A DNA stretch of 64,000 nt from Auanema rhodensis (lineage: Eukaryota > Animalia > Nematoda): the NCBI GenBank assembly GCA_964057225.1, contig OZ059894.1:11594001-11658000 (forward strand), read 5' to 3'. The notes beneath the pieces were generated by a model, which worked only from the letters and a program-made list of their open reading frames with translations, did no database searches and was not told the DNA's origin. Position numbers and translations under genes: made by a program. Every line of letters begins with the position of its first letter. The stretch's first letter is position 1. Shown one piece after another: positions 2,237-58,923 of this stretch.

Positions 2237-2288
2237 CTCTAGCAGATCTAAAGACTTACGTAGTACAGTTGCAATATCGATTTAGCCA
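1..2288 (-). mobile_element. Utopia-like U2-targeting non-LTR retrotransposon, copy 1 (3' part outside window)
   Basis: Nearly identical to the corresponding part of 27211-30920; same 5' junction to U2 nt 96 at 2289. Confidence 0.92.
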
Positions 2289-4293: not shown

Positions 4294-4420
4294 ACCAGTA
4301 TAGTAATAGAACACATATTGAAGATTAATTCGATAAGAACAATTTATTGACGTAGAGAATGTTTGTTCCGAAAAACTACAATATTAAACTATAAAAGTAA
4401 CAAAAGCGTAGAGGCAGCAA
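4294..4420 (-). pseudogene. Decayed junction: short-element 3' end / U2 nt 39-79 / short-element 5' start; present in every unit
   Basis: 4304-4344 matches U2 nt 39-79 at 36/41; flanks match the ends of 58058-58844. Confidence 0.8.
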
Positions 4421-10780: not shown

Positions 10781-10866
10781 TGTCGCGATAAGCGAGTAGG
10801 TTTTGTTTTTGTTATCTCTATCTCTCTCTCTATATATATATACCTCTCTCTATCTCTATCTCTCTA

Positions 10867-10911
<45 letters not shown>

Positions 10912-11174
10912 ATCTATCTCTATCTCTCTTTATCTCCTTCCTTTGTAATTAGATCAAAACACATATGCATAACATATGTGTTAACATGTGGCATAAGTAA
11001 CAGTTTATTTCAGACGACCGCCCAACAACGGAGGACAGTCTTACATTTTTTAACGTTCGCAGTCAGTGATTCTATTCCGTGCTTGTCTTGTTAATTCATC
11101 AATAAACCCTTTTCTACATATTCGCTTTGTGTTTTATTTCCAACCATACTATACACTTGCGGTATAACGCCACA
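10781..11174 (+). repeat. 5' LTR (394 bp, contains (CT)n)
   Basis: TGTCGCGA...CGCCACA, direct repeat of 20183-20582. Confidence 0.96.
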
Positions 11175-11177
11175 AAT

Positions 11178-11189
11178 TGGTGCATCGGC
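11178..11189 (+). promoter_or_regulatory. Primer binding site, probably tRNA-Gly
   Basis: TGGTGCATCGGC 3 nt after the LTR; complementary to a tRNA-Gly-type 3' end (...CGAUGCACCA). Confidence 0.75.
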
Positions 11190-11451
11190 TAGTTTAGATC
11201 TTAGCCGCTTTAAGTCCCGCGTGGCAGGTGAGATACAGCTCAAACCAAGCGTGTTTGAGCAAAAAACATACTTAATAGAAATCGTGGCAACCATTAGTCC
11301 ACGTCAAGTCACACCAAAAAGACTTGAACCATAAGCAAACTCTGCAGACAGAAACAGAGATTCACTATCACATATACTGTGATCACCAAACAAACAAAAA
11401 AAAAGAGAAAGTAAAAGGAATATAAGCATTATTCCTACATCTACGACAAAA

Positions 11452-14400: not shown

Positions 14401-17400
14401 AAGAAATGTAAAGAAACCCAAACACTATTCTCAGAAATAAACATGCATGTTCGCGAATTCTTGTCAAACGATGAACAAGTAATACAGAACCTTCCTGAAG
14501 AAGACAGATATCCGAACATGACAACCAAAATACTTGGCATATCTTTTAATAAAGAACACGACTCCTTCATTATCCCAATAAAAATAACAACGACTCACAC
14601 AAGTTACACCAAGAGAATTCTACTCAGTCAGTTACATTCAATATTTGATCCCATTGGATTATCAGCACCAATACTGTTACCCCTCAAACTTATCTTGCGA
14701 GAAATCATTAGCACAAAATTATCATGGGACCAACCCATTGACTCACACAGTATCAAGCAATGGGAACAACATATTACTCAGATTAACAATAAGCAATTAA
14801 CCATGAACAGATATTTTAAGTTTTCTGAACATGAAACACAGTTATGGGTCTTCGCTGACGCAAGCAACCAAGCAATGGCCGCTTGTTCATATTTCCAAAC
14901 AAATGGGAATATTAGTTCTCTGCTAAACGGGAAATCACGCATAGCACCCAAAAATAAAACTACAATTCCACGATTAGAGTTACTAGCCATTCGTTTAGCT
15001 GTACGAATGGCATTATCTATCGTCACCATATGTCCGAAAATAGCGAAAGTTAACATTGTGAGCGATAGCAACATCGCACTATCATGGATTGTCTCACAAA
15101 AATCTCTCCCACTGTTCATTAATAATCAAACAAATACTATAAAGAAACAGCTCAAGCAAATCGAACAAATATGTTGCAATATAGAACTATATCACGTACA
15201 AACCTCGTTCAACACAGCAGACATCGGATCTCGAGGTGCAGACATGGAAAAACTACAAGTTTCCGACTGGATTGAAGGCCCACATTGGTTAACTAAACTT
15301 TCCGTGCATAACCCTCTGACATCACTCGGCTCACCTAACAACTCGAGCAGGAATAACGCAGAATTAAAATCGGAGCATCACAATGTTGTCCACATAATCA
15401 TAGACAATCCTCCAACCCATGATATTTGGAACATTCGTGAAAACTATGATGACGTGATCAAAACAATGACAACCGTAGGGAAATTATTCAAGAAATGGTT
15501 TTTCACAGTCCATCCTAACGACGCCAACAAGTTGCAAAAAATAAAACATCTCACATCAACAGACACGCACACTGTTGAAGACATCAACATTATTGAAAAA
15601 ATTTTGATCAGTAACAGTCAATCTAATATGAGCCTTGATGACTTACAGCAAAGACATATAAATCTAAAATTCTTCAAAGATACATGGGATATTTATCGCG
15701 TAAGAAGCCGTTTACAAAATACTCTTCTTCCCGAAGAGACGAAAAACCCTATATTCCTTCTTAAAACAAACCCCATAGTTAAAAAACTGATCAACAAAAT
15801 ACACAAAGACAATAATCATCAAGGCAAACATTTCACGCTTATTCAACTCAGACAAAAGTTCTATATACCAAAAATAACCGGAGTCATTAAGCAAACATTG
15901 AAAAACTGTGTGACATGTAAAAGATTTCAATCACACCCTTATGAATTACCAGATATGCCATCGCTACCAAAAGATAGAACGATTCTTACAAGAGCATTCT
16001 TTTCAACAGGGTGTGATCTTATGGGCCCCTTCACCCTTCGAAATGGGTCTAAAGTCCATATCTGTCTGTTTACATGCATGACAACTAGAGCAATTCACTT
16101 AGAGGTAGTCACCAATCAATCCACAGTTGCTTTTATGAATGCATTCACTAGATTTATATCACGCAGAGGTACTCCAGAAATTATGCGTAGTGACTGCGCA
16201 GGAAACTTTATATTGAGCTCAAAAATATTAGAAACCCTTGAAAAAACATCGGATTACAACGAAAGAAGCTTACTAAACACACTAGCACAACAAAAAATTA
16301 AATGGATATACAACACTCCATTATCACCCTGGAAAGGTGGATGTTGGGAACGTTTAGTAGGTGTAACCAAAGCTTCACTCAAAAAATGTTTCATTCCTAG
16401 TCGAATGTCCCTGGATGACTTACACACAGCCATTGTAAAAATAGAAGCTATAATTAATACACGCCCACTCACCCATCCACACCCAGATAATTTAGATACT
16501 CTACCCATAAGGCCAATTGACTTTTTAACATCAGCCATAAAGTTTTCATTACCTGAAAACAACGCGGATACTCATATATTTGATATCCATAGCGATATTC
16601 AAACGATTCAATCAACAGAGCAAGCGCTAGAAGCGCTTCAATTATCAGAAGACTCAGCATCTAAATTTTGGAAACGATTTCAAGAAGAATATCTAACATG
16701 CTTAAAAGATATATTTAAGCATAAACACCATAGAAAGAATCACACAAACATCTTCCCCCAACCAGATGAAATAGTATTGATACAAAACGACATGTTGCCA
16801 CGAGGAACATGGAAACTAGGTCGCATCATTGAAACAATCACTAGTTCAGATGGCAACATACGTTCAGCAAAAGTTGCAACAAGCAACGGAAACATAATTA
16901 TTCGATCCATCAATCAGCTCTATCCACTAGAGATAAGATGCAACACTAACAGCAACAAAATCATAGAAGACAACTCACACATAGTTCAAGAAAATAATAG
17001 CTCAACAGATAGAACCCCACATACTGATATTGTATTAGACAATATACTTTTCGATCATCCTATAGAACATACAGATCAAACAATACATGAGAATAAAGAC
17101 ATAAATGATGTTAGCCATAATTACGATATTGCATATGAATCAGATAACTCTCAACATGATAATACATACACTCCAGAAACAGAGAATAATGAGGATGCAA
17201 CAAATGATCGACCTCAAAATAAGACAAAACAATCATCAGTAAAAACAGCAAAACATACAGAACAAGATGATGTCACTGAGAAGGAAATTATAAAAGCCTT
17301 CCCACTAAAAATGTCCTATGCTACACACCAAAGAAAAAATAAAATAAACCCAAAAGTAGCAGCTGACATAATGAAAGCGCTTTCCTTACCGATTATAATA

Positions 17401-19383: not shown

Positions 19384-19698
19384 TAAAGAAGATATAAAAG
19401 GTAGAATAAACAAAAGCAAAGTATAAACTAAAATTCACATAAATAAAATAAACCAAGGAGAGAAGAGAAGGGATTAATTTCTGAAATAATAAAGTAACAC
19501 GAATCTGCTAGTTTTACTTAAGATATCTAATCTGTAGTATTGAATTACATAATAACTCGTTAACAGACGTTTAATGGATAATATCAAAAACAGAAGGATA
19601 TCATATTAATCTCTGAATGACGTAATAGACACATATCATAGACCAGACGTCAACCAGTATATAAGGTGGCAAAACAAGTTTGCCTCAACTCAGTAGTA

Positions 19699-20160
19699 AT
19701 GGAGGATATAACGTCTAACTTAGTTGAGAACACTTCCTTCGAGGAAGATCTCAAAAAGTATTCGCATCTACCCAATACTACTGCAAGCCTGAGACAGCTA
19801 ATGGTCCTTGAAAAAAGGTTCTATGACAACCTGGCCAGCGCTGTGAACCACCTATCCGAGAGGCTGGACAACATTAACCACTCTCTGAATTTGAAACTGG
19901 ACAACCTAGCCGTCCAAACCGCGCCTAAGGCCTCCTGCATCTTTTGCAGCAAACCGACCGCTGATGGTCACCGAACCGCAGCTTGCCCAATATATCCCTC
20001 GTCTCCAGAGCGGACTCTACGTCTACATGAATTGGGACTATGTATCAGATGCTTGAACCCGAAACATCCGGACACATGCGAGGTATCTTGTTATAGATGC
20101 AAAGCAGAGACCCACCATGGAGTTGTGTGTGGGGAGACCAAACGTAAAAGACCCATGTAG
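19699..20160 (+). CDS. Accessory 3' ORF or exon: predicted coiled-coil plus three Gag-like Cys/His knuckles
   Basis: CIFC..HRTAAC, CIRC..HPDTC, CYRC..HHGVVC; first ATG 19699, frame open from 19666. Confidence 0.75.
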   Translation: MEDITSNLVENTSFEEDLKKYSHLPNTTASLRQLMVLEKRFYDNLASAVNHLSERLDNINHSLNLKLDNLAVQTAPKASCIFCSKPTADGHRTAACPIYPSSPERTLRLHELGLCIRCLNPKHPDTCEVSCYRCKAETHHGVVCGETKRKRPM

Positions 20161-20182
20161 GTCTTTACACTCTTGCCGGGAG

Positions 20183-20268
20183 TGTCGCGATAAGCGAGTA
20201 GGTTTTGTTTTTGTTATCTCTATCTCTCTCTCTATATATATATACCTCTCTCTATCTCTATCTCTCTA

Positions 20269-20319
<51 letters not shown>

Positions 20320-20582
20320 ATCTATCTCTATCTCTCTTTATCTCCTTCCTTTGTAATTAGATCAAAACACATATGCATAACATATGTGTTAACATGTGGC
20401 ATAAGTAACAGTTTATTTCAGACGACCGCCCAACAACGGAGGACAGTCTTACATTTTTTAACGTTCGCAGTCAGTGATTCTATTCCGTGCTTGTCTTGTT
20501 AATTCATCAATAAACCCTTTTCTACATATTCGCTTTGTGTTTTATTTCCAACCATACTATACACTTGCGGTATAACGCCACA
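20183..20582 (+). repeat. 3' LTR (400 bp)
   Basis: Matches the 5' LTR apart from 6 extra nt in (CT)n. Confidence 0.96.
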
Positions 20583-23007: not shown

Positions 23008-25649
23008 GGGTGGCGGACGTTTCGTCGTCTCTAGTTTGTGAACTAGTTCAGGCTGATCATTAGAGGGCAAACTTTATGATAATGTGCTGACAACTGTCAG
23101 TGTTCATGTAACTCGGGGTGCTATTAAAGCTATAAATCTATAGAAGTCAGATATAAGTGGCTACATACCTTGAAGTGCCATCAAAATATAAATTGAAAAA
23201 AGCAGAAATTAAAATAAACATACAGTTCTATCAACCAGGCTATCATCAAACAGTTTCAAGTCAACAGTTACGTGAGTTCATAGTAATAGTTGTTAGTTTA
23301 TCTTTTCTTTCGATAAGTTTGCTTATTCACACTTTCTCATCTTTTCTCGTTCATCATGATTTTTCCTTCTACTTTCTGTCCATTTTCTCTGATGATTAAC
23401 GCTCAGGGTAAATTTGTTCTTGTTTCTCAGCCTTTTGATAATGTTCCTTCGGAGAACATAACTATCTTTTTTAATAATTCTTCGGTAAATACTCAGAATC
23501 TTGAAGTTTATTCAAATGATGTAACTTCACTCTCATTTTTGAATTTCACTCTTCCATCTTTTAATATCCCTCCATTGAGGCAGCAAAATGTTAATTTTGC
23601 TTCTGCTCTTTCTCTAGTTAATTCATCTGCGGCATCTTCTTCAGTTGAATCTGTTGCTACAGTTACTGTTCCTACTGTCAACAGCGTTCCACTGTTCTCT
23701 TCTTCTACTTCACATCTTTCTATTCAGCCTTCTTCTTCTTCTTCTGCCGTTCATTCTTCACCGTCATCTTCTCTTTCTTCTTCTCCTCCTTCTGTTTCCT
23801 CTCCTTCTTTACCTGTTCTCTCTCCTTCTTCTTCTGTTCCCTCTCCTTCTTCTTCTGTTCCCTCTCCTTCTTCTTCTGTTCCCTCTCCTTCTTCTTCATT
23901 TTCTTTGCAATCTGCAAATCCTAACTCATACGCCGCTCTCATTGCGCCTTCTAAGCAGGGTGTACACCCCTGTTTAGAATATAAATTTGAAAACTTGCTG
24001 TATCGCTACCAATTCAGTAGTAAAAGTTCTCAAAAAGCTTATTCTATTTATCGTTGCACAGGTTGTAAACATTTGGGTAAATACACTTCTATCAAAGTAG
24101 AAAATAATGTATTTCTCGAAAATCCTGTTGCTCAAAACCATCATTGTGATCCATTTTTGTTTTCTATTAACAAATGCAAAAATATCACATACTCTCTAAC
24201 TCAGAATATTAAAAGTTCAGACTCATGTTTTGAGATGAAAGCATATTCCTTATTTGTCAATGAAATAAAAAAAATATTTCATGAATCTGAGTTAGAAGAG
24301 CATGAAAAGCAAGAAGTTTCCTCTGCTTGGTTTCATGGTGGCTATGACAGTAGACGTAGAGCTATTACAAGGGCTTTAAGTTCTCGTAAAGACTTAAGAA
24401 CATCCATGACCAATGTTCCTCTGTCTCTGTCTAAAACTATCAATGGTCGTACGTTCTTGCATTTTCATGACAGCGAGTTTCATTTGTATTTCGATACATT
24501 TTGTTTGGAACTAGCTGTTCAGAATGGTTTAACTCATTTGCTTGGGGACGGTTGTTTCAAATACCAGCCTTTGGATATGGAACAAACATATACCATCATG
24601 GGCGGTTGCAGAAATGGAACAACTGTACCTCTTTTCTATTCCATTTTAAAAAATAAGAGTAGGTTCACTTATAGAAGGCTTCTTCAACATATTGCACTAG
24701 CTCTCTCCAACGTTGGTTGCATAGTTGAAAACCTTATTTTTATCTGTGATTTTGAGATCGCTGTAATAAGGGAAGCTGAAACTATTTTTAATTCTGTTCA
24801 AGGATGTGCATTTCATTATGCTCAGAGCTTGAACAGACGGTTTCTTCAACTGGGTTTGACACAAGCAGAGAAGCAATCCATTGAAATCAAACAATGGCAT
24901 GGTCGGCTGCTGGGCTTGCTCTTCCTTCAAACTGATCTTATCTCACGGTCCGGGTTACTCAATTCTCCTGTTTCTTCTGATCATCCATCATATTCTTCTT
25001 GTCTTCAAATGATCAGTTATGTGAATGAAACATGGATTGAAGGACCTTTGCGACATTATTGGAGCAAATGGGACATAAAACAGTTTCGTACATCTAATAA
25101 TGTTGAATCTTTTCACCGTAAAATGAAGACTATTTTATCTTGCTCTCATCCTCCTCTTTCTGAATTAATTACTTTTTTTCATGGTGAAAATTTGATGGCT
25201 AATCATGTCCTGATCGCTTTGTCATCGAATGTTGAGCCTGCCAGGAAAAAAAGAAAAAACGTAATTGAGAGGCAACAACGGATTGAGGTTTAGTTTGAAA
25301 ACTTTAGGAGCATCTCCAATAACCGACTGCCTAATCAGCAAGAAATAATAGCATATGTCGAGGAGATGGCGAAGTTTAACACCAGAAAATCTTATTTTTG
25401 AATCATTTAACTTGAAAAACTAAACTCTAATAAATTTTTTGAATCATATCTTTTTTTTCTAACACAAAAACCTCCTTGCCGTTTAGATTGAAAACCTCGA
25501 TTTTTTATGAACTGTTTAAGTTTTTGGGTAATTTTTAGAAGTCTAAACGACCAAAAACTGAGAGTACAACACGTGTGGTATAATTTACGACCGTTAGGCT
25601 TGCTGGGGAGAGGTTGTAAAAATAGGAGACGACGAAACGTCTCAGACCC
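23008..25649 (+). mobile_element. Mutator-like (MULE) DNA transposon
   Basis: 9-bp TSD GGACGGGAT (22999-23007, 25650-25658); 24-bp imperfect TIRs GGGTnnnnGACGTTTCGTCGTCTC (20/24); transposase ORF. Confidence 0.93.
23356..25293 (+). CDS. MULE DDE transposase (start uncertain, stop possibly premature)
   Basis: GDGCFK, ICDFE, GCAFH (CxxH) and TSNNVESFH motifs; Cys/His region YRCTGC..HHC; Ser/Pro-rich N-terminal repeats. Confidence 0.88.
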   Translation: MIFPSTFCPFSLMINAQGKFVLVSQPFDNVPSENITIFFNNSSVNTQNLEVYSNDVTSLSFLNFTLPSFNIPPLRQQNVNFASALSLVNSSAASSSVESVATVTVPTVNSVPLFSSSTSHLSIQPSSSSSAVHSSPSSSLSSSPPSVSSPSLPVLSPSSSVPSPSSSVPSPSSSVPSPSSSFSLQSANPNSYAALIAPSKQGVHPCLEYKFENLLYRYQFSSKSSQKAYSIYRCTGCKHLGKYTSIKVENNVFLENPVAQNHHCDPFLFSINKCKNITYSLTQNIKSSDSCFEMKAYSLFVNEIKKIFHESELEEHEKQEVSSAWFHGGYDSRRRAITRALSSRKDLRTSMTNVPLSLSKTINGRTFLHFHDSEFHLYFDTFCLELAVQNGLTHLLGDGCFKYQPLDMEQTYTIMGGCRNGTTVPLFYSILKNKSRFTYRRLLQHIALALSNVGCIVENLIFICDFEIAVIREAETIFNSVQGCAFHYAQSLNRRFLQLGLTQAEKQSIEIKQWHGRLLGLLFLQTDLISRSGLLNSPVSSDHPSYSSCLQMISYVNETWIEGPLRHYWSKWDIKQFRTSNNVESFHRKMKTILSCSHPPLSELITFFHGENLMANHVLIALSSNVEPARKKRKNVIERQQRIEV

Positions 25650-27210: not shown

Positions 27211-30200
27211 ATGGTTTATTGAATAACTAATGTTATGATACAATAAATAACCAATAAAAAAGAGCCCAGAATCGGGGAGACGGTATTACCAGTACAACTT
27301 AAAACAGCAAGTAATTAAAAAGTACATAATAAGACACATTGCCAACAGAGGCTAAAACGACTCAAGAGTCGGGGGAGTGGGTTAAAAAAAAATGAACAAA
27401 AAAAATGAATATTAAAGCAGAACAATGAGAAATCAAGTGCCGCTATGATCAAACAATTTGAGTGCCTACGGCAATGATGTTAAAAATAAACAACAAAATA
27501 CATGTACCAATGAAGGTCAGAAAGAAAGAAACAAAAGACAAAATAAGTAATACAAAAAGTAAATACATTACAATCAAATCACAAACAAGTCAATTGATAA
27601 TTTCTTCTTCATATTGCCTTACACCAGAAACATGTTCCACGTAGATATTCCTGGCCCACTTGATGGTATCGGCGACGACGAGCTTCTCCATTAGCCGGTT
27701 GTAGTGGCTGCTGATCTTGAGTGATCGGAGGGCTTGTCCGTTGAGCGGGTCCATAGTTCCAAGCATTCCTACGACATACGCTTCTACACTAGTCTTATAA
27801 CCAAGACATTGGTATTGGCTGGCTATGTCAGCATATTTCCTCTCCTTTATCATACGCGCGGCTATCATGGCTTGACGGCGGTTTTCATAGCTCACTGTAA
27901 CATCAACGATACTACAGTGTTTTGCGTCATGATCGACCACTACTATGTCAGGTCGGAGTGTACTATTAATGCCAGGAAGAGGCTGGTTAGTGTAAACTTC
28001 TCCGTTTTTAGGCTCTGGCAGGGCTTTGATAAGACGGTCCACGATGTTGTTGTGGCGGAGTTGGATTGCTCTCGTGTGAGAGTGGCAGTGTCCAAGAACA
28101 TGTGCAGCAGTTTCGTTGGAGTAACTACACCTGCGGCACTGTTTGTTTCCTTCTCCGTGTCTTCTACAGCCATTGAGCTGGAGAGTATTGAGTCGAGCCT
28201 TGTGGATGAATCGCCAATCAGCAAACCGTATGAAATCTCCCTTCGCCATAAAGTGATTGGACGCTTTGTTGAGCATTGTGACATCAAAGACTTTCCCTTG
28301 ATCCGGTTTTTGAAGAAGGATCCGAAGGTCTTTCAGCCATAATGCACGTCGCAGGCTTCTGTGGCATAGTGAAGGTGTTAACAGTTGGTTGTTTAGATTG
28401 AGTTCTAAACCACTTTCGAGGCATGTCCAGTTAGCGTTGATGAGTTTCTTGAGTTGACGCATCGCTACTCTTACTCTAGTCCAGATGGAGGAAACATCAG
28501 ATGTTTCGGTGTCGAAAATGCCATCAACGGAACCGTTGTAATATGCAGCTGTCTCATCGTTACTGGCTTGACGTTTAATCCTTTTTGATGCTACTTTTTT
28601 TGAGTCTTGATGCGCAATATCAGCTACTACAAGATCAGATGACTTCAAAAGTTGGTAGGCATGAGTGACTTCACAGACGTCTGACAGGTGTTGGAGTCGA
28701 GAGAGACCAAGTCCGCCGTAGTTAGTTGGCAGGTAGATTGGTTCAGCACTGGCGTTTGGAGGATAGTGCATCCATCTACAGGCACAGCGTTTGAGTTCTT
28801 TGTCAAAGGCGACTAGTTTACTCTTTGGGACGTGGCCATTCGTCATATGAAAATTAAGGCAGGGCATCAGGAAGGTGCGTACTGCGTCAGCTTTCTGCCA
28901 TTCAGCAAGTAAGGATTTGTCAATTTTTTCCAAGTGTTGACTCATAATATTCACTGTTGGAACCGCAGACTTATGTAAATGCATTCCAGTAGGGATTCCC
29001 AGGTGGGAGTAGCTGTCAAATTTGCTAAGAGCGGGTAGAGAGGAGCTCTGTAGCATGTATGAGGCTGTTGATATTTTCCCTTTGTCGATCGTCAAGGTGG
29101 CGCATTTCGCTGGTTTGAAGGTCAAGCCTGTGAAATTAGCCGCATTTGATGCTGCGTCCAACATTTTCTGTAGATCTTCTGATGATGAGGAGACCAGGGC
29201 AAGGTCATCGGCGTACGCTAGCACAGCGATGTTGTGGTTGTGTAGCTTATAGCCTGTAGAGGTTTCCAAGATGGTTTTAATTAGAGGTTCAATGGCAAGG
29301 TTGAACAGGATCGGAGATAGTGGGGATCCTTGTAACACACCTGCGTGAACTGGAATGGTCGAAGTGAGTCCGGAGCCTGTCTGGATTCTTGTAGAGGCAT
29401 CTGTGTATAGAGCTCGTACTCGGGATATTGAGGCTTCAGCCATTCCTGACCATCTTAGAACGTCTAGCAGAGTTTCGTGTGGCAGCGATCCAAAAGCGTT
29501 TGCGAGATCAAGCCAAGCAATTGCAATTTTCTCACGTTTACGTTTAGCGTCCGCAATGGTACTTTGCAACATAAAGTTGTGTTCCATGCATCCAGCTTTG
29601 GCCACAAAGCCCTTTTGGGAGGGAGAAAGTCTTTTTTCTGCTCTTGCCCATGTTAGCAGTCGATGCGTAAGACAAGCTGAGTACGTCTTACCAATTGTGC
29701 ACGAAAGTGCTATTGGTCGCCAGTTGTTAATGTCAGCTTTATCACCTTTCTTATGGATGAGGACGGTGGTCGACTCTTTCCAGGAAAAAGGGATGTGTCC
29801 TAGCTTGTGTACGGTGTTAAATATCGCTGCTAATATGTGACCTCCTTGGTCAAATTTCTTCCAGTGCGAGTATCGAAGTCCATCAGCTCCTGGAGCCGTA
29901 TCGCTGCAACGTCGTATGCGTTCCCAGACTTCCAAAGGGGTGAAAACACCTTCTAGTGGGTCGGTACTAGCTGGCAAATCCGGTCTGGTGACTGTGATGG
30001 GGAGGGCTGGGCCTTGACTGCTGTGAACAGAAAGGAAGTGTTTTTCAACCTCTGCAGATGGTATGGTGCAGGTTTCACTTTGTTCTCCGAGCAGTTGTCG
30101 AAAGGCTTTCTTCTTGTTGGCCCTCCAAAGCTTCTGGAGCTTCATCGCCTGGGTTTTTTGGTCTTCCTCAGGTTGTGTGTGTGGTCGGCGCCTTTGTCGG

Positions 30201-30920
30201 AAGTTGGGAACTTTGATCATAATGTCAAGAGACTTTCTGATTGTGTCTACCAACTCTTCCAGGACCTGCTCGAGCTCACTTTTGCACACTACCTTTTTAA
30301 TTCTATCCACCCAAATATTTTCAGAGTTTCTATTCGGATCAGGGTCGGCAAAAGATGGTTCTGTACTCGGAACCCTGATCTCGTTGAATATTTCACTCTC
30401 TCGCGGAAGGGGGGAAACTTCGGCCTCTGGGGACAAGTCCAGAATTGGGGCCTCAAACAAGCGTACCGTTGATGGAGATCCTTGTTCCTGTCCACTGGAT
30501 GATGTTTCCTCCATTGTACGCTCCTCCACGGGCGGGGTGGTCGTCCTTGTGCCTGGTGGGCGGGTGTTCCTGATCCTCCGCAATATAGGGCGGGAACTGG
30601 GCTCTCTCGGAGATAGAGGTGAGATCACCACAGTTTCCTCTATGATGCGGAGACATCCTTCAGCTTTTTTCTGATGGCTTTTAACGGCCTTCAGATTGCT
30701 GGTGAGGCCACAGGCACGGCACTCAAATTCTACTCTGACCTCATGTTCTCTCCGAAGATGGCGGACGAGACCATTGTGGTCTGAGTAGGATCGCGGAATA
30801 GGAGCGCAGATTGAACACGAAAAAGGGCTCTGAAGAGGCACCTTTAGCTTGTAAAGCCCTTGCTCCATCTCTAGCAGATCTAAAGACTTACGTAGTACAG
30901 TTGCAATATCGATTTAGCCA
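27211..30920 (-). mobile_element. Utopia-like U2-targeting RLE non-LTR retrotransposon, copy 2 (3710 bp, full length)
   Basis: Inserted in U2 at nt ~38; 52-nt leader, single ORF, ~380-nt 3' UTR ending AATAAACCAT, no poly(A). Confidence 0.94.
27590..30868 (-). CDS. Zn-finger / RT / CCHC / restriction-like endonuclease protein, 1092 aa
   Basis: CSIC..H..H and CRAC..H..C fingers, WRPIAL, WLDLANAFGS, GVLQGSPLSP, YADD, CRRC..HVLGHC, RHN, RPDIVV..IVDVTV..KERKY. Confidence 0.96.
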   Translation of the reverse strand: MEQGLYKLKVPLQSPFSCSICAPIPRSYSDHNGLVRHLRREHEVRVEFECRACGLTSNLKAVKSHQKKAEGCLRIIEETVVISPLSPREPSSRPILRRIRNTRPPGTRTTTPPVEERTMEETSSSGQEQGSPSTVRLFEAPILDLSPEAEVSPLPRESEIFNEIRVPSTEPSFADPDPNRNSENIWVDRIKKVVCKSELEQVLEELVDTIRKSLDIMIKVPNFRQRRRPHTQPEEDQKTQAMKLQKLWRANKKKAFRQLLGEQSETCTIPSAEVEKHFLSVHSSQGPALPITVTRPDLPASTDPLEGVFTPLEVWERIRRCSDTAPGADGLRYSHWKKFDQGGHILAAIFNTVHKLGHIPFSWKESTTVLIHKKGDKADINNWRPIALSCTIGKTYSACLTHRLLTWARAEKRLSPSQKGFVAKAGCMEHNFMLQSTIADAKRKREKIAIAWLDLANAFGSLPHETLLDVLRWSGMAEASISRVRALYTDASTRIQTGSGLTSTIPVHAGVLQGSPLSPILFNLAIEPLIKTILETSTGYKLHNHNIAVLAYADDLALVSSSSEDLQKMLDAASNAANFTGLTFKPAKCATLTIDKGKISTASYMLQSSSLPALSKFDSYSHLGIPTGMHLHKSAVPTVNIMSQHLEKIDKSLLAEWQKADAVRTFLMPCLNFHMTNGHVPKSKLVAFDKELKRCACRWMHYPPNASAEPIYLPTNYGGLGLSRLQHLSDVCEVTHAYQLLKSSDLVVADIAHQDSKKVASKRIKRQASNDETAAYYNGSVDGIFDTETSDVSSIWTRVRVAMRQLKKLINANWTCLESGLELNLNNQLLTPSLCHRSLRRALWLKDLRILLQKPDQGKVFDVTMLNKASNHFMAKGDFIRFADWRFIHKARLNTLQLNGCRRHGEGNKQCRRCSYSNETAAHVLGHCHSHTRAIQLRHNNIVDRLIKALPEPKNGEVYTNQPLPGINSTLRPDIVVVDHDAKHCSIVDVTVSYENRRQAMIAARMIKERKYADIASQYQCLGYKTSVEAYVVGMLGTMDPLNGQALRSLKISSHYNRLMEKLVVADTIKWARNIYVEHVSGVRQYEEEIIN

Positions 30921-35937: not shown

Positions 35938-38900
35938 ATGGTTTATTGAATAACTAATGTTATGATACAATAAATAACCAATAAAAAAGAGCCCAGAATC
36001 GGGGAGACGGTATTACCAGTACAACTTAAAACAGCAAGTAATTAAAAAGTACATAATAAGACACATTGCCAACAGAGGCTAAAACGACTCAAGAGTCGGG
36101 GGAGTGGGTTAAAAAAAATGAACAAAAAAATGAATATTAAAGCAGAACAATGAGAAATCAAGTGCCGCTATGATCAAACAATTTGAGTGCCTACGGCAAT
36201 GATGTTAAAAATAAACAACAAAATACATGTACCAATGAAGGTCAGAAAGAAAGAAACAAAAGACAAAAATAAGTAATACAAAAAGTAAATACATTACAAT
36301 CAAATCACAAACAAGTCAATTGATAATTTCTTCTTCATATTGCCTTACACCAGAAACATGTTCCACGTAGATATTCCTGGCCCACTTGATGGTATCGGCG
36401 ACGACGAGCTTCTCCATTAGCCGGTTGTAGTGGCTGCTGATCTTGAGTGATCGGAGGGCTTGTCCGTTGAGCGGGTCCATAGTTCCAAGCATTCCTACGA
36501 CATATGCTTCTACACTAGTCTTATAACCAAGACATTGGTATTGGCTGGCTATGTCAGCATATTTCCTCTCCTTTATCATACGCGCGGCTATCATGGCTTG
36601 ACGGCGGTTTTCATAGCTCACTGTAACATCAACGATACTACAGTGTTTTGCGTCATGATCGACCACTACTATGTCAGGTCGGAGTGTACTATTAATGTCA
36701 GGAAGAGGCTGGTTAGTGTAAACTTCTCCGTTTTTAGGCTCTGGCAGGGCTTTGATAAGACGGTCCACGATGTTGTTGTGGCGGAGTTGGATTGCTCTCG
36801 TGTGAGAGTGGCAGTGTCCAAGAACATGTGCAGCAGTTTCGTTGGAGTAACTACACCTGCGGCACTGTTTGTTTCCTTCTCCGTGTCTTCTACAGCCATT
36901 GAGCTGGAGAGTATTGAGTCGAGCCTTGTGGATGAATCGCCAATCAGCAAACCGTATGAAATCTCCCTTCGCCATAAAGTGATTGGACGCTTTGTTGAGC
37001 ATTGTGACATCAAAGACTTTCCCTTGATCCGGTTTTTGAAGAAGGATCCGAAGGTCTTTCAGCCATAATGCACGTCGCAGGCTTCTGTGGCATAGTGAAG
37101 GTGTTAACAGTTGGTTGTTTAGATTGAGTTCTAAACCACTTTCGAGGCATGTCCAGTTAGCGTTGATGAGTTTCTTGAGTTGACGCATCGCTACTCTTAC
37201 TCTAGTCCAGATGGAGGAAACATCAGATGTTTCGGTGTCGAAAATGCCATCAACGGAACCGTTGTAATATGCAGCTGTCTCATCGTTACTGGCTTGACGT
37301 TTAATCCTTTTTGATGCTACTTTTTTTGAGTCTTGATGCGCAATATCAGCTACTACAAGATCAGATGACTTCAAAAGTTGGTAGGCATGAGTGACTTCAC
37401 AGACGTCTGACAGGTGTTGGAGTCGAGAGAGACCAAGTCCGCCGTAGTTAGTTGGCAGGTAGATTGGTTCAGCACTGGCGTTTGGAGGATAGTGCATCCA
37501 TCTACGGGCACAGCGTTTGAGTTCTTTGTCAAAGGCGACTAGTTTACTCTTTGGGACGTGGCCATTCGTCATATGAAAATTAAGGCAGGGCATCAGGAAG
37601 GTGCGTACTGCGTCAGCTTTCTGCCATTCAGCAAGTAAGGATTTGTCAATTTTTTCCAAGTGTTGACTCATAATATTCACTGTTGGAACCGCAGACTTAT
37701 GTAAATGCATTCCAGTAGGGATTCCCAGGTGGGAGTAGCTGTCGAATTTGCTGAGAGCGGGTAGAGAGGAGCTCTGTAGCATGTATGAGGCTGTTGATAT
37801 TTTCCCTTTGTCGATCGTCAAGGTGGCGCATTTCGCTGGTTTGAAGGTCAAGCCTGTGAAATTAGCCGCATTTGATGCTGCGTCCAACATTTTCTGTAGA
37901 TCTTCTGATGATGAGGAGACCAGGGCAAGGTCATCGGCGTACGCTAGCACAGCGATGTTGTGGTTGTGTAGCTTATAGCCAGTAGAGGATTCCAAGATGG
38001 TTTTAATTAGAGGTTCAATGGCAAGGTTGAACAGGATCGGAGATAGTGGGGATCCTTGTAACACACCTGCATGAACTGGAATGGTCGATGTGAGTCCGGA
38101 GCCTGTCTGGATTCTTGTAGAGGCATCTGTGTATAGAGCTCGTACTCGGGATATTGAGGCTTCAGCCACTCCTGACCATCTTAGAACGTCTAGCAGAGTT
38201 TCGTGTGGCAGCGATCCAAAAGCGTTTGCGAGATCAAGCCAAGCAATTGCAATTTTCTCACGTTTACGTTTAGCGTCCGCAATGGTACTTTGCAACATAA
38301 AGTTGTGTTCCATGCATCCAGCTTTGGCCACAAAGCCCTTTTGGGAGGGAGAAAGTCTTTTTTCTGCTCTTGCCCATGTTAGCAGTCGATGCGTAAGACA
38401 AGCTGAGTACGTCTTACCAATTGTGCACGAAAGTGCTATTGGTCGCCAGTTGTTAATGTCAGCTTTATCACCTTTCTTATGGATGAGGACGGTGGTCGAC
38501 TCTTTCCAGGAAAAAGGGATGTGTCCTAGCTTGTGTACGGTGTTAAATATCGCTGCTAATATGTGACCTCCTTGGTCAAATTTCTTCCAGTGCGAGTATC
38601 GAAGTCCATCAGCTCCTGGAGCCGTATCGCTGCAACGTCGTATGCGTTCCCAGACTTCCAAAGGGGTGAAAACACCTTCTAATGGGTCGGTACTAGCTGG
38701 CAAATCCGGTCTGGTGACTGTGATGGGGAGGGCTGGGCCTTGACTGCTGTGAACAGAAAGGAAATGTTTTTCAACCTCTGCAGATGGTATGGTGCAGGTT
38801 TCACTTTGTTCTCCGAGCAGTTGTCGAAAGGCTTTCTTCTTGTTGGCCCTCCAGAGCTTCTGGAGCTTCATCGCCTGGGTTTTTTGGTCTTCCTCAGGTT

Positions 38901-39646
38901 GTGTGTGTGGTCGGCGCCTTTGTCGGAAGTTGGGAACTTTGATCATAATGTCAAGAGACTTTCTGATTGCGTCTACCAACTCTTCCAGGACCTGCTCGAG
39001 CTCACTTTTGCACACAACCTTTTTAATTCTATCCACCCAAGTATTTTCAGAGTTTCTATTCGGATCAGGGTCGGCAAAAAATGGTTCTGTACTCGAAACC
39101 CTGATCTCGTTGAATATTTCACTCTCTCGCGGAAGGGGGGAAACTTCGGCCTCTGGGGACAAGTCCAGAATTGGGGCCTCAAACAAGCGTACCGTTGATG
39201 GAGATCCTTGTTCCTGTCCACTGGATGATGTTTCCTCCATTGTACGCTCCTCCACGGGCGGGGTGGTCGTCCTTGTGCCTGGTGGGCGGGTGTTCCTGAT
39301 CCTCCGCAATATAGGGCGGGAACTGGGCTCTCTCGGAGATAGAGGTGAGATCACCACAGTTTCCTCTATGATGCGGAGGCATCCTTCAGCTTTTTTCTGA
39401 TGGCTTTTAACGGCCTTCAGATTGCTGGTGAGGCCACAGGCACGGCACTCAAATTCTACTCCGACCTCATGTTCTCTCCGAAGATGGCGGACGAGACCAT
39501 TGTGGTCTGAGTAGGATCGCGGAATAGGAGCGCAGATTGAACAAGAAAAAGGGCTCTGAAGAGGCACCTTTAGCTTGTAAAGCCCTTGCTCCATCTCTAG
39601 CAGATCTAAAGACTTACGTAGTACAGTTGCAATATCGATTTAGCCA
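35938..39646 (-). mobile_element. Utopia-like retrotransposon, copy 3 (3709 bp, full length)
   Basis: Same junctions and ORF as copy 2 with scattered substitutions. Confidence 0.94.
36316..39594 (-). CDS. Zn-finger / RT / RLE protein, 1092 aa
   Basis: Same motifs as 27590-30868; YADD intact. Confidence 0.96.
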   Translation of the reverse strand: MEQGLYKLKVPLQSPFSCSICAPIPRSYSDHNGLVRHLRREHEVGVEFECRACGLTSNLKAVKSHQKKAEGCLRIIEETVVISPLSPREPSSRPILRRIRNTRPPGTRTTTPPVEERTMEETSSSGQEQGSPSTVRLFEAPILDLSPEAEVSPLPRESEIFNEIRVSSTEPFFADPDPNRNSENTWVDRIKKVVCKSELEQVLEELVDAIRKSLDIMIKVPNFRQRRRPHTQPEEDQKTQAMKLQKLWRANKKKAFRQLLGEQSETCTIPSAEVEKHFLSVHSSQGPALPITVTRPDLPASTDPLEGVFTPLEVWERIRRCSDTAPGADGLRYSHWKKFDQGGHILAAIFNTVHKLGHIPFSWKESTTVLIHKKGDKADINNWRPIALSCTIGKTYSACLTHRLLTWARAEKRLSPSQKGFVAKAGCMEHNFMLQSTIADAKRKREKIAIAWLDLANAFGSLPHETLLDVLRWSGVAEASISRVRALYTDASTRIQTGSGLTSTIPVHAGVLQGSPLSPILFNLAIEPLIKTILESSTGYKLHNHNIAVLAYADDLALVSSSSEDLQKMLDAASNAANFTGLTFKPAKCATLTIDKGKISTASYMLQSSSLPALSKFDSYSHLGIPTGMHLHKSAVPTVNIMSQHLEKIDKSLLAEWQKADAVRTFLMPCLNFHMTNGHVPKSKLVAFDKELKRCARRWMHYPPNASAEPIYLPTNYGGLGLSRLQHLSDVCEVTHAYQLLKSSDLVVADIAHQDSKKVASKRIKRQASNDETAAYYNGSVDGIFDTETSDVSSIWTRVRVAMRQLKKLINANWTCLESGLELNLNNQLLTPSLCHRSLRRALWLKDLRILLQKPDQGKVFDVTMLNKASNHFMAKGDFIRFADWRFIHKARLNTLQLNGCRRHGEGNKQCRRCSYSNETAAHVLGHCHSHTRAIQLRHNNIVDRLIKALPEPKNGEVYTNQPLPDINSTLRPDIVVVDHDAKHCSIVDVTVSYENRRQAMIAARMIKERKYADIASQYQCLGYKTSVEAYVVGMLGTMDPLNGQALRSLKISSHYNRLMEKLVVADTIKWARNIYVEHVSGVRQYEEEIIN

Positions 39647-39704
39647 TTAACCTTATTGTGAACCAATGGAACACATATCGAAGGTTAATTCGATAAGAAC
39701 GATT

Positions 39705-42700
39705 TATTGAAGTAGGAAATGTTTTGCCCCGTAGGACTACAAGTAAATATTATCTAGCACAAGGCTATTAGAGAATGATAAGATACTACCTGCACTAAGT
39801 GCGTCGCATCGTAAAGGGAAAAAAAATTAAACAATGGGAGTTTAACAGCATGAAATTGAGAGAAAAGACATATCCGAGTGTGAATAAAATTACGGGTGAA
39901 CGGAACATGGAGTACGAGAGACATACAAAACGAGACTAAGTGAAAAGAAAAAGTCTTGTATCACGTTCATGAAGGTTCGACGGATCCGGTAAGAAGCTGC
40001 GGGTTCAGAAGGTCAGCTTTTATCTCGTAGTCGTGGCGCATCAGGAATTTGTGAAGCTTTCCGGCTTTGCAGACGGCTGTATTGGTCCTCGTAGGATGGT
40101 GGAAGATGTTGTCGCTTAGTGATGTTACACATAAAGATATGCAAAAATAGAACAATTCAAAGAAAAAGAGCACAATTAAAACGAGATTTGGAGAGAAGAG
40201 AAGTCTTATATCACTTTCGATGGTTCGGAAGCTCCAGTCTGCTGCTGCGGTTTAGGGGGTGCAACTGGCATGTCGGAGGCGTAGCACATCATAGGTCAAG
40301 CTTGCTGGACTCCCGGCTCGGCTGGTGGCTGTGAGTTTTCCTTGTGCTTGTTCTCGGTGGTGGTCCCTGGGCTGTCTCTTCACCAAAAATTACTATACTA
40401 ATTGCACATTTCATTTAAACGACCCATTTCAGAAGCTTTAAGAGGAAAAGCTACAATTAGCATAGGACCGCCTCAAGGCCTGGTGGATCATTCAATTTAG
40501 TTTCAATCGCCAAGTATAGCGGCCTGGGCCCTTGGGTCAATTCACTGAACCAGTGTAGTATCGATTGTTCAATGGAACACATATCGAAGGTTAATTCGAT
40601 AAGAACGATTTATTGAAGTAGGAAATGTTTTGCCCCGTAGGACTACAAGTAAATATTATCTAGCACAAGGCTATTAGAGAATGATAAGATACTACCTGCA
40701 CTAAGTGCGTCGCATCGTAAAGGGAAAAAAAATTAAACAATGGGAGTTTAACAGCATGAAATTGAGAGAAAAGACATATCCGAGTGTGAATAAAATTACG
40801 GGTGAACGGAACATGGAGTACGAGAGACATACAAAACGAGACTAAGTGAAAAGAAAAAGTCTTGTATCACGTTCATGAAGGTTCGACGGATCCGGTAAGA
40901 AGCTGCGGGTTCAGAAGGTCAGCTTTCATCTCGTAGTCGTGGCGCATCAGGAATTTGTGAAGCTTTCCGGCTTTGCAGACGGCTGTATTGGTCCTCGTAG
41001 GATGGTGGAAGATGTTGTCGCTTAGTGATGTTACACATAAAGATATGCAAAAATAGAACAATTCAAAGAAAAAGAGCACAATTAAAACGAGATTTGGAGA
41101 GAAGAGAAGTCTTATATCACTTTCGATGGTTCGGAAGCTCCAGTCTGCTGCTGCGGTTTAGGGGGTGCAACTGGCATGTCGGAGGCGTAGCACATCATAG
41201 GTCAAGCTTGCTGGACTCCCGGCTCGGCTGGTGGCTGTGAGTTTTCCTTGTGCTTGTTCTCGGTGGTGGTCCCTGGGCTGTCTCTTCACCAAAAATTACT
41301 ATACTAATTGCACATTTCATTTAAACGACCCATTTCAGAAGCTTTAAGAGGAAAAGCTACAATTAGCATAGGACCGCCTCAAGGCCTGGTGGATCATTCA
41401 ATTTAGTTTCAATCGCCAAGTATAGCGGCCTGGGCCCTTGGGTCAATTCACTGAACCAGTGTAGTATCGATTGTTCAATGGAACACATATCGAAGGTTAA
41501 TTCGATAAGAACGATTTATTGAAGTAGGAAATGTTTTGCCCCGTAGGACTACAAGTAAATATTATCTAGCACAAGGCTATTAGAGAATGATAAGATACTA
41601 CCTGCACTAAGTGCGTCGCATCGTAAAGGGAAAAAAAATTAAACAATGGGAGTTTAACAGCATGAAATTGAGAGAAAAGACATATCCGAGTGTGAATAAA
41701 ATTACGGGTGAACGGAACATGGAGTACGAGAGACATACAAAACGAGACTAAGTGAAAAGAAAAAGTCTTGTATCACGTTCATGAAGGTTCGACGGATCCG
41801 GTAAGAAGCTGCGGGTTCAGAAGGTCAGCTTTTATCTCGTAGTCGTGGCGCATCAGGAATTTGTGAAGCTTTCCGGCTTTGCAGACGGCTGTATTGGTCC
41901 TCGTAGGATGGTGGAAGATGTTGTCGCTTAGTGATGTTACACATAAAGATATGCAAAAATAGAACAATTCAAAGAAAAAGAGCACAATTAAAACGAGATT
42001 TGGAGAGAAGAGAAGTCTTATATCACTTTCGATGGTTCGGAAGCTCCAGTCTGCTGCTGCGGTTTAGGGGGTGCAACTGGCATGTCGGAGGCGTAGCACA
42101 TCATAGGTCAAGCTTGCTGGACTCCCGGCTCGGCTGGTGGCTGTGAGTTTTCCTTGTGCTTGTTCTCGGTGGTGGTCCCTGGGCTGTCTCTTCACCAAAA
42201 ATTACTATACTAATTGCACATTTCATTTAAACGACCCATTTCAGAAGCTTTAAGAGGAAAAGCTACAATTAGCATAGGACCGCCTCAAGGCCTGGTGGAT
42301 CATTCAATTTAGTTTCAATCGCCAAGTATAGCGGCCTGGGCCCTTGGGTCAATTCACTGAACCAGTGTAGTATCGATTGTTCAATGGAACACATATCGAA
42401 GGTTAATTCGATAAGAACGATTTATTGAAGTAGGAAATGTTTTGCCCCGTAGGACTACAAGTAAATATTATCTAGCACAAGGCTATTAGAGAATGATAAG
42501 ATACTACCTGCACTAAGTGCGTCGCATCGTAAAGGGAAAAAAAATTAAACAATGGGAGTTTAACAGCATGAAATTGAGAGAAAAGACATATCCGAGTGTG
42601 AATAAAATTACGGGTGAACGGAACATGGAGTACGAGAGACATACAAAACGAGACTAAGTGAAAAGAAAAAGTCTTGTATCACGTTCATGAAGGTTCGACG

Positions 42701-43287
42701 GATCCGGTAAGAAGCTGCGGGTTCAGAAGGTCAGCTTTCATCTCGTAGTCGTGGCGCATCAGGAATTTGTGAAGCTTTCCGGCTTTGCAGACGGCTGTAT
42801 TGGTCCTCGTAGGATGGTGGAAGATGTTGTCGCTTAGTGATGTTACACATAAAGATATGCAAAAATAGAACAATTCAAAGAAAAAGAGCACAATTAAAAC
42901 GAGATTTGGAGAGAAGAGAAGTCTTATATCACTTTCGATGGTTCGGAAGCTCCAGTCTGCTGCTGCGGTTTAGGGGGTGCAACTGGCATGTCGGAGGCGT
43001 AGCACATCATAGGTCAAGCTTGCTGGACTCCCGGCTCGGCTGGTGGCTGTGAGTTTTCCTTGTGCTTGTTCTCGGTGGTGGTCCCTGGGCTGTCTCTTCA
43101 CCAAAAATTACTATACTAATTGCACATTTCATTTAAACGACCCATTTCAGAAGCTTTAAGAGGAAAAGCTACAATTAGCATAGGACCGCCTCAAGGCCTG
43201 GTGGATCATTCAATTTAGTTTCAATCGCCAAGTATAGCGGCCTGGGCCCTTGGGTCAATTCACTGAACCAGTGTAGTATCGATTGTT
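39705..43287 (-). mobile_element. Four tandem 865-bp U2-inserted short elements (39705-40569, 40611-41475, 41517-42381, 42423-43287) separated by U2 nt 39-79; putative non-autonomous retroelement, type A
   Basis: 906-bp period; each 3' end abuts U2 nt 39, forming AATAAA; each 5' end follows U2 nt 79; no RT ORF. Confidence 0.85.
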
Positions 43288-43366
43288 CAATGGAACACAT
43301 ATCGAAGGTTAATTCGATAAGAACGATTACTACACTTTGATCTTAGCCAAAAGGCCGAGAAGCGAT
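43288..43366 (-). pseudogene. U2: U2 5' fragment (nt 1-79) fused to the type A element
   Basis: U2 sequence ends ...TTCCATTG then AACAATCG. Confidence 0.92.
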
Positions 43367-44168: not shown

Positions 44169-44198
44169 AGCTTACGACACCCGGGATTCCCAAGCCGT
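44169..44198 (-). pseudogene. 5S remnant (last 30 nt); ~101-bp deletion with 6-nt filler
   Basis: caagccgt|tatcag|ttcattatcag; spacing 95 bp shorter than in other units. Confidence 0.9.
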
Positions 44199-44334
44199 TA
44201 TCAGTTCATTATCAGTTATATCACTCTAAATCTTGTTGTTAATAGATACGACCACAAAGAAAACAACAGGAACAGTAACAATAACAAAAAAAATTTTTTT
44301 TTCACCTATGTGTCTAAAGGTTAGCCATGTATCC

Positions 44335-58057: not shown

Positions 58058-58844
58058 TATTGAAGTAGATAATGTTTGTCCCGGAGGACTACAATATTAA
58101 AATAATTACTGAAGCCCGAAGGCAGCGAGAAATAGTAAGGATACTACCTGCACTGAGTGCGTCGTATCATAAAAAAAGAGATAGCTAATGGGCAAGTTGA
58201 AGAGCTTGAAATTAACAATGACGTCACTAGAAGTAAAGTTTTCTATCTGCAGCTGCGGGTAAAGAGGGTCAGCGTAAGCAGAATTCAATTCTACCAACAA
58301 TTAGTGGGAACATTGAGAGAACAGATGAAGGAGGAAATTGTAACTTCAAGTAAAATAGATTATATCTTCAGCTGCGGGTAAAGAGAGTCAGCTTTGTACA
58401 GATTACTAGTTTACATAAGAAGTGGTAACATTTCAAAAAAGGAGCACAACATAAAAAACGAGACTACGGACTATGAGGTAAATGTTATCATTGTCTGGAT
58501 CGATGATTCGGCATTTGATTGCAGCTGCGGATTGAGTGGATCAGCTTGCATGGCGTCCGCATTCGACATCAGGGAAAATGATGAGTTTCTTGAGGTCCGG
58601 CTCGGCGGGCTGTTATGTCCTATTCCCTGTTGATGGTGTTGTTGTCCTTGAGCTTGTTCTTCTTCCCAGAAAAAAAAAACTGTGAAGCTGAAGAGTCCTA
58701 TTAAACGTCTTTAAACGCAAGATTAATAAGAAGCTACTACAGCTAACACAGGACCGCCTCAAGGCCTGGTAGATCAACCAGTGTTGCTTCAATCACCAAG
58801 TATTGCGGCCTGGGCCCTTGGATCAATTCACAACACCAGTATAG
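58058..58844 (-). mobile_element. 787-bp U2-inserted short element; putative non-autonomous retroelement, type B
   Basis: Same junctions as type A (U2 nt 39-79 on both sides); shares 5' and 3' blocks with type A, middle diverged. Confidence 0.85.
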
Positions 58845-58923
58845 CAATGGAACACATATCGAAGGTTAATTCGATAAGAACGATTACTACACTTTGATCT
58901 TAGCCAAAAGGCCGAGAAGCGAT
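58845..58923 (-). pseudogene. U2: U2 5' fragment (nt 1-79) fused to the type B element
   Basis: ...TTCCATTG then CTATACTGG. Confidence 0.92.

Follow-up and report, generated by a model that had tools for sequence, protein, structure and literature searches.

The question raised by this locus concerns the role of a conserved stretch of about 185 nt, read on the minus strand, with which short insertions in the U2 small nuclear RNA (snRNA) genes of the nematode Auanema rhodensis begin at their 5' ends. The DNA that was analyzed, referred to below as the window, comprises 64,000 nt (positions 11,594,001 to 11,658,000 of contig OZ059894.1, assembly GCA_964057225.1), and the coordinates given are positions within it. 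The conserved stretch is carried by two families of insertions, A and B, and the results described here make it most probable that it serves these short non-autonomous retroelements as a cis-acting RNA module at the 5' end that is under selection. A preliminary description of this DNA had proposed an unclassified functional RNA module, and this proposal was supported in part: retroelements inserted into U2 carry at their 5' ends a module at the RNA level that belongs to no known class, it has no match in Rfam, and one of its helices is truly compensated.

Short Non-Coding Elements in the U2 Genes

A scan with Rfam identified the window as a tandem array of ~2.47-kb units, with a single U2 snRNA gene and two genes for 5S rRNA in each. 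The U2 and 5S genes of the array are without exception on the minus strand, and several of the U2 genes are interrupted. The anatomy of the insertions was derived by comparison of the window with a canonical array unit, and in the subsequent scripted analyses the U2 portion was restricted to nucleotides numbered at least 39.

The elements A (865 bp) and B (787 bp) are both short and non-coding, their longest open reading frame (ORF) being at most 79 aa. Element A is present in four tandem copies on the minus strand (39705–43287; 865 bp each, with a period of 906 bp), which are 99.9–100% identical to each other and 100% identical over the first 240 nt in all four. The last of these copies, A1, extends from 39705 to 40569 (minus strand) and its 5' module occupies 40383–40569, identical modules being present at 41289–41475, 42195–42381, and 43101–43287. 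A units are preceded by a 41-bp leader or spacer consisting of U2 nt 39–79 (40570–40610, 41476–41516, and 42382–42422, minus strand), which is 100% identical to the U2 sequence of the array unit, and upstream of the tandem the full 5' half of U2 starts at 43288. Element B (58058–58844, minus strand) lies between U2 nt 1–79 and U2 nt 39–190; its 5' module is located at 58667–58844 and the U2 leader (nt 39–79) that precedes it at 58845–58885, both on the minus strand.

In the preliminary description the module had been regarded as the 5' domain of an R2-type element bearing a reverse transcriptase (RT). An autonomous, Utopia-like element with an ORF of 1092 aa (36316–39594) is located at 35938–39646 on the minus strand, and it lacks the 5' module. 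Between this element and copy A1 lies a fragment consisting of U2 nt 39–96 (39647–39704, minus strand), the other flank of the element being formed by U2 nt 38–190. As this fragment separates it from A1, which is one of four non-coding units, the module is not the 5' untranslated region (UTR) of the RT element, and the earlier assignment has to be replaced by one in which the module forms the 5' end of the non-coding A and B elements. The 5' UTR of the autonomous element is 52 nt in length, and nothing similar to the module is present in this element. The RT domain lies within the 1092-aa ORF, its best structural relatives being R2 proteins (E-value of about 1e-69), and the same ORF contains a C-terminal CCHC knuckle as well as restriction-like endonuclease (RLE) motifs. 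Relatives of this protein are found in arthropods and nematodes and are without APE domains. The autonomous element occurs three times in the window (1–2288, 27211–30920, and 35938–39646); as these copies exhibit 98.8–99.4% mutual identity and the 1092-aa ORF is intact in two of the three, recent activity of the element is suggested.

At their 3' junctions A, B, and the autonomous element are alike, with U2 resuming at nt 38/39 without its first 38 nt. A 3' junction with U2 lacking these nucleotides corresponds to the published Utopia/Keno site (PMC4640811). The upstream junction, in contrast, is family-specific: in A and B it is at U2 nt 79, whereas each autonomous copy is preceded by U2 through nt 96, immediately before the Sm site. 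The U2 sequence repeated at these insertions amounts to 41 bp and 58–59 bp, an intact target is regenerated upstream of each insertion, and the insertions are stacked in tandem. Short internally deleted elements (SIDEs) are non-autonomous derivatives of site-specific elements which keep only a 5' module and a 3' end (PMC3414825). Similar to them, A and B share the site and the 3' junction of an autonomous element, contain no RT ORF, and are present in multiple copies (four of A in this window). The alignment of the 3' ends of A and B with that of the autonomous element was not significant (z = 1.0 and 0.3), and the likeness of the last ~35 nt of the short and autonomous elements (ATTGTA.TC / AACATTA / TTCAATA) is seen by eye only.

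Some other features of the short elements were also observed. They possess a 3'-terminal hairpin on the minus strand (~39727–39740 in A, ~58080–58093 in B, and ~4366–4379 in a fossil copy), in which UNCG tetraloops are enclosed by compensatory stems (GUCC-UACG-GGGC, GUCC-UCCG-GGAC, and GUUU-UUCG-GAAC), and it is probably through this hairpin that the 3' end is recognized for reverse transcription. Inside both elements (A 39870–40330, B 58215–58400) a module is duplicated (...CCTGATG...CCGCAGC...GTGATAYAAGACTT...), a 53-nt repeat with 81% identity is present in the interior of B, and the interiors of A and B have conserved islands in common, such as GCCGAGCCGG. The fossil copy belongs to a tandem-insertion junction (4300–4400, minus strand) which is present in every array unit (e.g., 6822–6868 and 9299–9345) and follows each U2 gene at a distance of ~265 nt downstream. 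In it, the 3' end of a B-like element is joined to a diverged U2 nt 39–79, and this in turn to the initial ~12 nt of the 5' module (CTATACTGGT), after which the fossil copy of the module ends. As this junction is found in every unit, the family of short elements is older than the homogenization of the array and the terminus of the module is ancient.

Conservation and Folding of the 5' Module

The comparisons described here are based upon two independent sequences of the module, those of A and B, in which all of the motifs quoted in the preliminary description were found on the minus strand at 40383–40569 (A) and 58667–58844 (B). From 5' to 3' the module is composed of a terminus, an irregular hairpin, a linker, a distal long hairpin, and a U-tract, all of them on the minus strand. 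The conserved terminus CUAYACUGGU (A 40549–40558, B 58835–58844), which is also found in the fossil junction, is preceded in A only by 11 additional nt (40559–40569). By direct reading, the 5' terminus of the element (A 40549–40561, B 58838–58844) is complementary to U2 nt ~30–38, which constitute the branch-point recognition sequence and immediately precede the insertion site; the complementarity extends over nine of nine positions in A (UACUACACU) and over seven, with one G.U pair, in B (CUAUACU). The motif UACUAC is also present in the autonomous element, near its position 25. The irregular hairpin (A 40493–40552, B 58779–58838), which is well predicted in B only, consists of a variable outer helix, a symmetric 9x9 internal loop with the conserved strands UGAAUUGAY and YGAUUGAAR, an invariant CCAAG/CUUGG helix, and a GC-rich apical loop of 16 nt. 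It is followed by the conserved 27-nt linker ...UGAUCYACCAGGCCUUGAGGCGGUC (A 40466–40492, B 58752–58778), which includes a run of 21 nt that is invariant between A and B, and then by the distal long hairpin of ~72 nt (A 40393–40465, B 58680–58751). The U-tract after this hairpin reads UAAUUUUUGG in A (40383–40392), where it fits the Sm-site consensus, and in B it consists of U10 (58670–58679) followed by CUG, as determined by direct reading.

When A and B are aligned, 83% of the first 108 nt are identical, and the identity of the last ~155 nt is 73%. In windows of 40 columns, the identity is 80–85% in the 5' core, 42–50% in the next ~80 nt, 30–60% in the interior, and 78–82% in two islands near the 3' end. 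Within the core, the differences between A and B are clustered in two patches, which lie opposite each other in the helix of B, and invariant runs of 17 and 21 nt are present. This pattern, in which the core is conserved, the pairing of the hairpin is kept at 42–50% identity, and the interior has diverged, argues for function. Such conservation might also reflect a short encoded peptide, as a same-frame ORF is open in both families (41 aa in A, 34 aa in B), with ...QGPRP...PGLEAVLC in common and the same stop position. However, the substitution pattern is neutral, the differing codons comprising 4 synonymous and 11 non-synonymous changes against a neutral expectation of 0.24 synonymous, and the terminal "synonymous" changes are compensated positions of the hairpin. 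Further, B contains no AUG and no similar protein was found among 5.8 billion sequences. A coding function for the core is thus extremely improbable and was rejected.

The distal hairpin has clearly been kept by selection, as indicated by compensatory change. When folded alone it has a z-score of −3.65 in A, where 2 of 500 shuffles are as good, and of −4.39 in B, where none of 500 is. A later helix that corresponds between A and B had been noted earlier at this place, and it was confirmed: ten pairs are shared, three of which differ by double-sided changes (A-U to G-C twice and U-A to C-G once) and one by a one-sided change, while none is broken, although the identity in this region is only about 45%. 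The U-tract that was described as following this helix in both families is likewise present, as U5 within AAUUUUUGG in A and as U10 in B. Due to its G.U pairs, the hairpin could be assigned to the sense strand of the element.

Covariation had originally been ascribed to the domain as a whole; it holds for the distal hairpin with its three double changes, whereas no covariation signal was detected in the core. As the four A copies are nearly identical, the independent sequences number only two, too few to establish covariation in the core. Invariance between the two families was confirmed, as had been stated, for the inner helix CCAAG/CUUGG. The outer helix GUUCAGU/AUUGAAU of A was said to be replaced in B, but the replacement is not column for column, the helix of A being at i+j = 100 and that of B at i+j = 95. 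In the register of A four of the seven pairs are retained by B, and in the register of B seven of the ten are retained by A, with two double-sided changes; the outer helices of A and B use overlapping nucleotides in different registers. In B both the outer and the inner helix are predicted with a base-pair probability of about 0.95; in A the values are 0.001 and 0.075, respectively. The fold of the whole domain has a z-score of −0.64 in A and −2.31 in B. In the hairpin as initially drawn, the conserved strands of the internal loop are opposed as G.A, A.A, A.G, U.U, U.U, G.A, and A.G, and the pyrimidine pair that flanks the inner helix differs in concert, being C.C in A and U.U in B. This symmetric internal loop, which is beyond scoring by energy models, may be the reason why the sequence of the core is fixed.

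The pseudoknot or kissing loop that was suggested previously, in which the apical loop would pair with the downstream linker, gained no statistical support. The complementarity is present (E = −15.5 kcal/mol), but it is equalled by 7–17% of composition-matched shuffles and is therefore at chance level. Pairing of the core with the 3' end of the element, or with the U2 portion analyzed (nt ≥39), was also not found beyond chance, the sole exception being the first 30 nt of A against its own 3' end (z = −2.8), which is not common to B.

Possible Roles of the Module

Site-specific non-LTR elements (those without long terminal repeats, LTRs) that rely upon co-transcription with a host gene need the 5' end of their RNA to be defined and protected, and the transcription of U2 snRNA genes by RNA polymerase II (Pol II) involves capping and is coupled to Integrator. 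We tentatively favor, with somewhat less than even confidence, the proposal that the module is an RT-independent device which defines, processes, or protects the RNA 5' end, an RT-independent role being preferred because the module is absent from the RT element. According to this proposal, A and B, which occupy the Utopia/Keno site in the U2 snRNA genes, would be transcribed from the U2 promoter as co-transcripts with a U2 leader. The module would act on the RNA 5' end independently of the RT, either by cleaving or defining RNA of unit length from U2 or tandem co-transcripts or by shielding the 5' end, and the U2 leader would stay on the RNA. Annealing of the complementary DNA (cDNA) to the target via the retained leader could then give rise to the uniform junction at U2 nt 79. 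The role of the module would equal that of the 5' ribozyme in R2 and its SIDE derivatives, but its fold would not be like that of the hepatitis delta virus (HDV) ribozyme. In accordance with this proposal, U2 nt 79 is immediately followed by the module in A as well as in B, and the tandem copies have the layout [U2 39–79][A]. The conservation of the 5' core and the 3' islands relative to the interior, the clustering of the differences, the compensated distal hairpin, and the presence of A in RNA-like sequencing runs speak for it as well. The family-specific U2 repeats, the regenerated upstream target, and the tandem stacking also fit an RNA that retains a U2 leader at its 5' end.

A number of observations weigh against the proposed role in 5'-end definition. 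Only two independent sequences are to hand, and when the ~95-nt core is folded alone the result is at chance (z = +0.1 in A and −0.8 in B). The fold chosen by RNAalifold is another one, comprising invariant pairs only, and by enumeration of helices many mutually exclusive conserved helices are found that suit both A and B. No cleavage site can be named in the module, none of the Rfam ribozymes (hammerhead, twister, twister-sister, pistol, hatchet, and others) gave a match at E ≤ 10, and an HDV-like fold was rejected because, within the U2 nt 39–79 leader plus 330 nt, no consistent set of P1, P3, L3, P1.1, and P2 is present at homologous positions in A and B. Further, the copy nearest to the promoter does not strictly need to be processed, as a transcript that starts at the U2 start site is already capped and has a defined 5' end. 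The folding of the core at chance, the pseudoknot complementarity at chance, and the many alternative helices that fit just two sequences are also in keeping with a module that lacks any function at the RNA level. Its lower divergence would then be due to recent exchange between the families or to a constraint on the DNA, and all of the helices except the distal hairpin would have arisen by chance. We consider this improbable, as the differences between A and B are clustered instead of uniform, three double changes keep the distal hairpin at 42–50% identity, and the old fossil junction retains the same terminus.

The identity of the module was also examined by comparison with known RNA families. 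As proposed earlier, the domain was searched against Rfam, and inputs of 192 and 183 nt as well as wider regions gave no match at the gathering threshold or even at E ≤ 10. The lone match, to the mir-471 hairpin, is at chance level (14.8 bits, where the gathering score is 80) and was rejected. Likenesses to the nematode SL1, the loop L4 of twister, and the GAUC motif of 7SK served only as leads; none of them is conserved from one family to the other, and Rfam gave them no support. A descriptor search for HDV-like folds, which covered the U2 nt 39–79 leader plus 330 nt and did not include U2 nt 1–38 as a partner for P1, gave no candidate at the same positions in the two families, and its counts were within the range of shuffles. 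The catalytic C in J4/2 is absent: when the hairpin is taken as P4, the strand that follows is UAAUUUUU in A or U10 in B, and the only conserved candidate for a P2 strand is YUGG, before which no C is present after this hairpin. Several HDV-like models, built by hand or from descriptors, among them one in which U2 nt 61–66 and AUUGAA of the element form P1 and CGC/GYG forms P3, were rejected as well, because P2 and P4 do not agree between the two families, the AU-rich P1 competes with U2 stem-loop IIa, and there is no catalytic C. That the core could be a new RNA which cleaves itself or defines the 5' end in some other way, with a fold related neither to HDV-like nor to hammerhead or twister ribozymes, and which releases unit-length templates with a U2 leader from co-transcripts of the snRNA promoter and from tandem arrays, is regarded by us as doubtful.

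The module could instead serve as a recognition site for the Utopia-like RT/RLE protein, promoting top-strand cleavage or steps in second-strand synthesis. The loops and the linker are conserved as sequence without covariation, a purine-rich symmetric internal loop is typical of protein sites, and the upstream junction of A and B (U2 nt 79) is unlike that of the autonomous element (nt 96). In addition, a structured segment close to R2Bm's 5' end promotes top-strand cleavage (earlier work, described in PMC12222951). However, because the only RT element present has no similar 5' sequence, this explanation is weakened; R2Tg cleaves without need of its 5' UTR (PMC12222951), and the 5' UTRs of related scorpion Utopia elements are unrelated to the module in sequence. 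A function in RT binding thus appears rather unlikely.

The terminal hairpin and the U-tract, which form the 3' edge of the module in both families, are reminiscent of a small RNA. The R2 RT is known to jump templates onto U12 snRNA and tRNA at the 5' ends of elements (PMC3414825), and the module might accordingly be a captured cellular small RNA of ~180 nt, or a module resembling a small nuclear ribonucleoprotein (snRNP) that recruits Sm, LSm, or La for stability or nuclear trafficking. By the Sm-site criterion, RAU(4-6)GR between stem-loops, AAUUUUUGG of A fits the consensus and comes after a hairpin, whereas the U10 of B is followed by C and is not a canonical Sm site, and no conserved hairpin is found downstream. 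Rfam contains no match to any small RNA and no source gene is visible within the window. An origin from U2 itself was suggested by a by-eye likeness to stem-loop III and nt 77–83, but the scores equal the shuffle mean and the similarity to U2 nt 39–190 is not significant (local alignment, z = −0.96 to +1.5 with dinucleotide shuffles), so that this candidate was rejected. On balance, we judge a captured or snRNP-like RNA to be unlikely.

No homolog of the module was found elsewhere in the searches that were made. A scan of metagenome contigs with a 19-mer gave 36 matches, all of which are limited to the seed and lie in bacterial contigs of 52–81% GC, and a 26-nt pattern from the core with one open position had no match in collections of genomes and viral contigs. 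No database record was found for the RT proteins of the window, the contigs with the closest RT relatives are without useful 5' flanks, and the Utopia elements in U2 of scorpions possess a conserved 5' UTR of their own, which is unrelated to the module. Public sequencing runs hold element A nearly complete, and three RNA-like runs contain about 0.8 of its words, whereas in two other runs the fraction is only 13–17%.

The array also contains insertions of other kinds. One of its units harbors a Bel/Pao-type LTR retrotransposon (10781–20582) with an ORF on the plus strand (11452–19383), which encodes a polyprotein of 2643 aa with a phlebovirus-G2-like envelope domain at its end. A second insertion (23010–25648) contains a plus-strand ORF of 645 aa (23356–25293), whose product gave a weak match to MULE transposases (26.2 bits, against a Pfam cut-off of 27.6), and a tandem 21-bp repeat is found in it near 23802–23885. 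In the array unit upstream of the A tandem (44198–44205), ~100 bp are missing (unit positions 1023–1123) and a single 5S gene is present.

Comparison with Known Systems

In R2, a 5' HDV-like ribozyme frees the element from the rRNA co-transcript, and when the cleavage site lies in the upstream target, the cDNA can anneal by way of the target sequence kept on the RNA, as a result of which junctions are uniform and target duplications can propagate (PMC3774820). The 5' structures also stabilize R2 templates (PMC12222951). In the R2/R1 hybrid SIDEs only the R2 ribozyme is kept at the 5' end, which indicates that a 5' module can be independent of the RT that mobilizes the element (PMC3414825). Similar to the R2 SIDEs and hybrids, A and B are short and non-coding, occupy the site of an autonomous RLE/RT element in a tandem array of RNA genes, and are probably co-transcribed with the host gene; they also resemble R2 SIDEs in the possession of a conserved ~180-nt 5' RNA module and a conserved 3' end, and the hybrids in that the 5' module need not derive from the element that supplies the RT (PMC3414825). 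However, the host of A and B is U2 snRNA, with an snRNA-type Pol II promoter, whereas that of the SIDEs is ribosomal DNA. The module of A and B, known here from sequence, is not HDV-like, and neither end of these elements is significantly similar to the resident autonomous element.

The HDV-like ribozymes of R2, RTE, and L1Tc share with the module its position at the 5' junction, a GC-rich conserved core next to which a peripheral hairpin varies, and junctions of uniform structure in which target-derived sequence is retained (PMC3774820), but A and B have no consistent P1/P3/L3/P1.1/P2 set, catalytic C, or HDV-type match in Rfam. With Utopia (RLE) and Keno (APE), the likeness consists of an identical 3' junction, with U2 lacking its first 38 nt, and of tandem insertions in U2 (PMC4640811), and it extends to the partner ORF, which belongs to the R2 type and contains both a CCHC knuckle and RLE motifs. 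The target duplications of those elements are of 0–20 bp, in contrast to the 41 and 58–59 bp of U2 repeated here, and the words "non-autonomous" and "ribozyme" are absent from the paper that describes them (PMC4640811). The protein-binding pseudoknot RNA at the 5' end of R2Bm is comparable in that it, too, is structured, lies close to the 5' end of its element, and has unpaired stretches that are conserved; it belongs, however, to an element that encodes its RT, whereas here the RT element is without the module and a pseudoknot is unsupported.

If the module processes or stabilizes the RNA or recruits factors to it, it would show the adaptation by a retroelement of 5'-end handling to an snRNA transcription unit, and if functional it could add a new functional RNA motif of relevance to the engineering of R2-type insertion templates. 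Should it be inert, a non-autonomous family specific for the U2 site is still documented. In either case, A and B provide a system of parasites in U2 snRNA genes that is comparable to the derivatives of R2, with a conserved 5' module that is not HDV-like.

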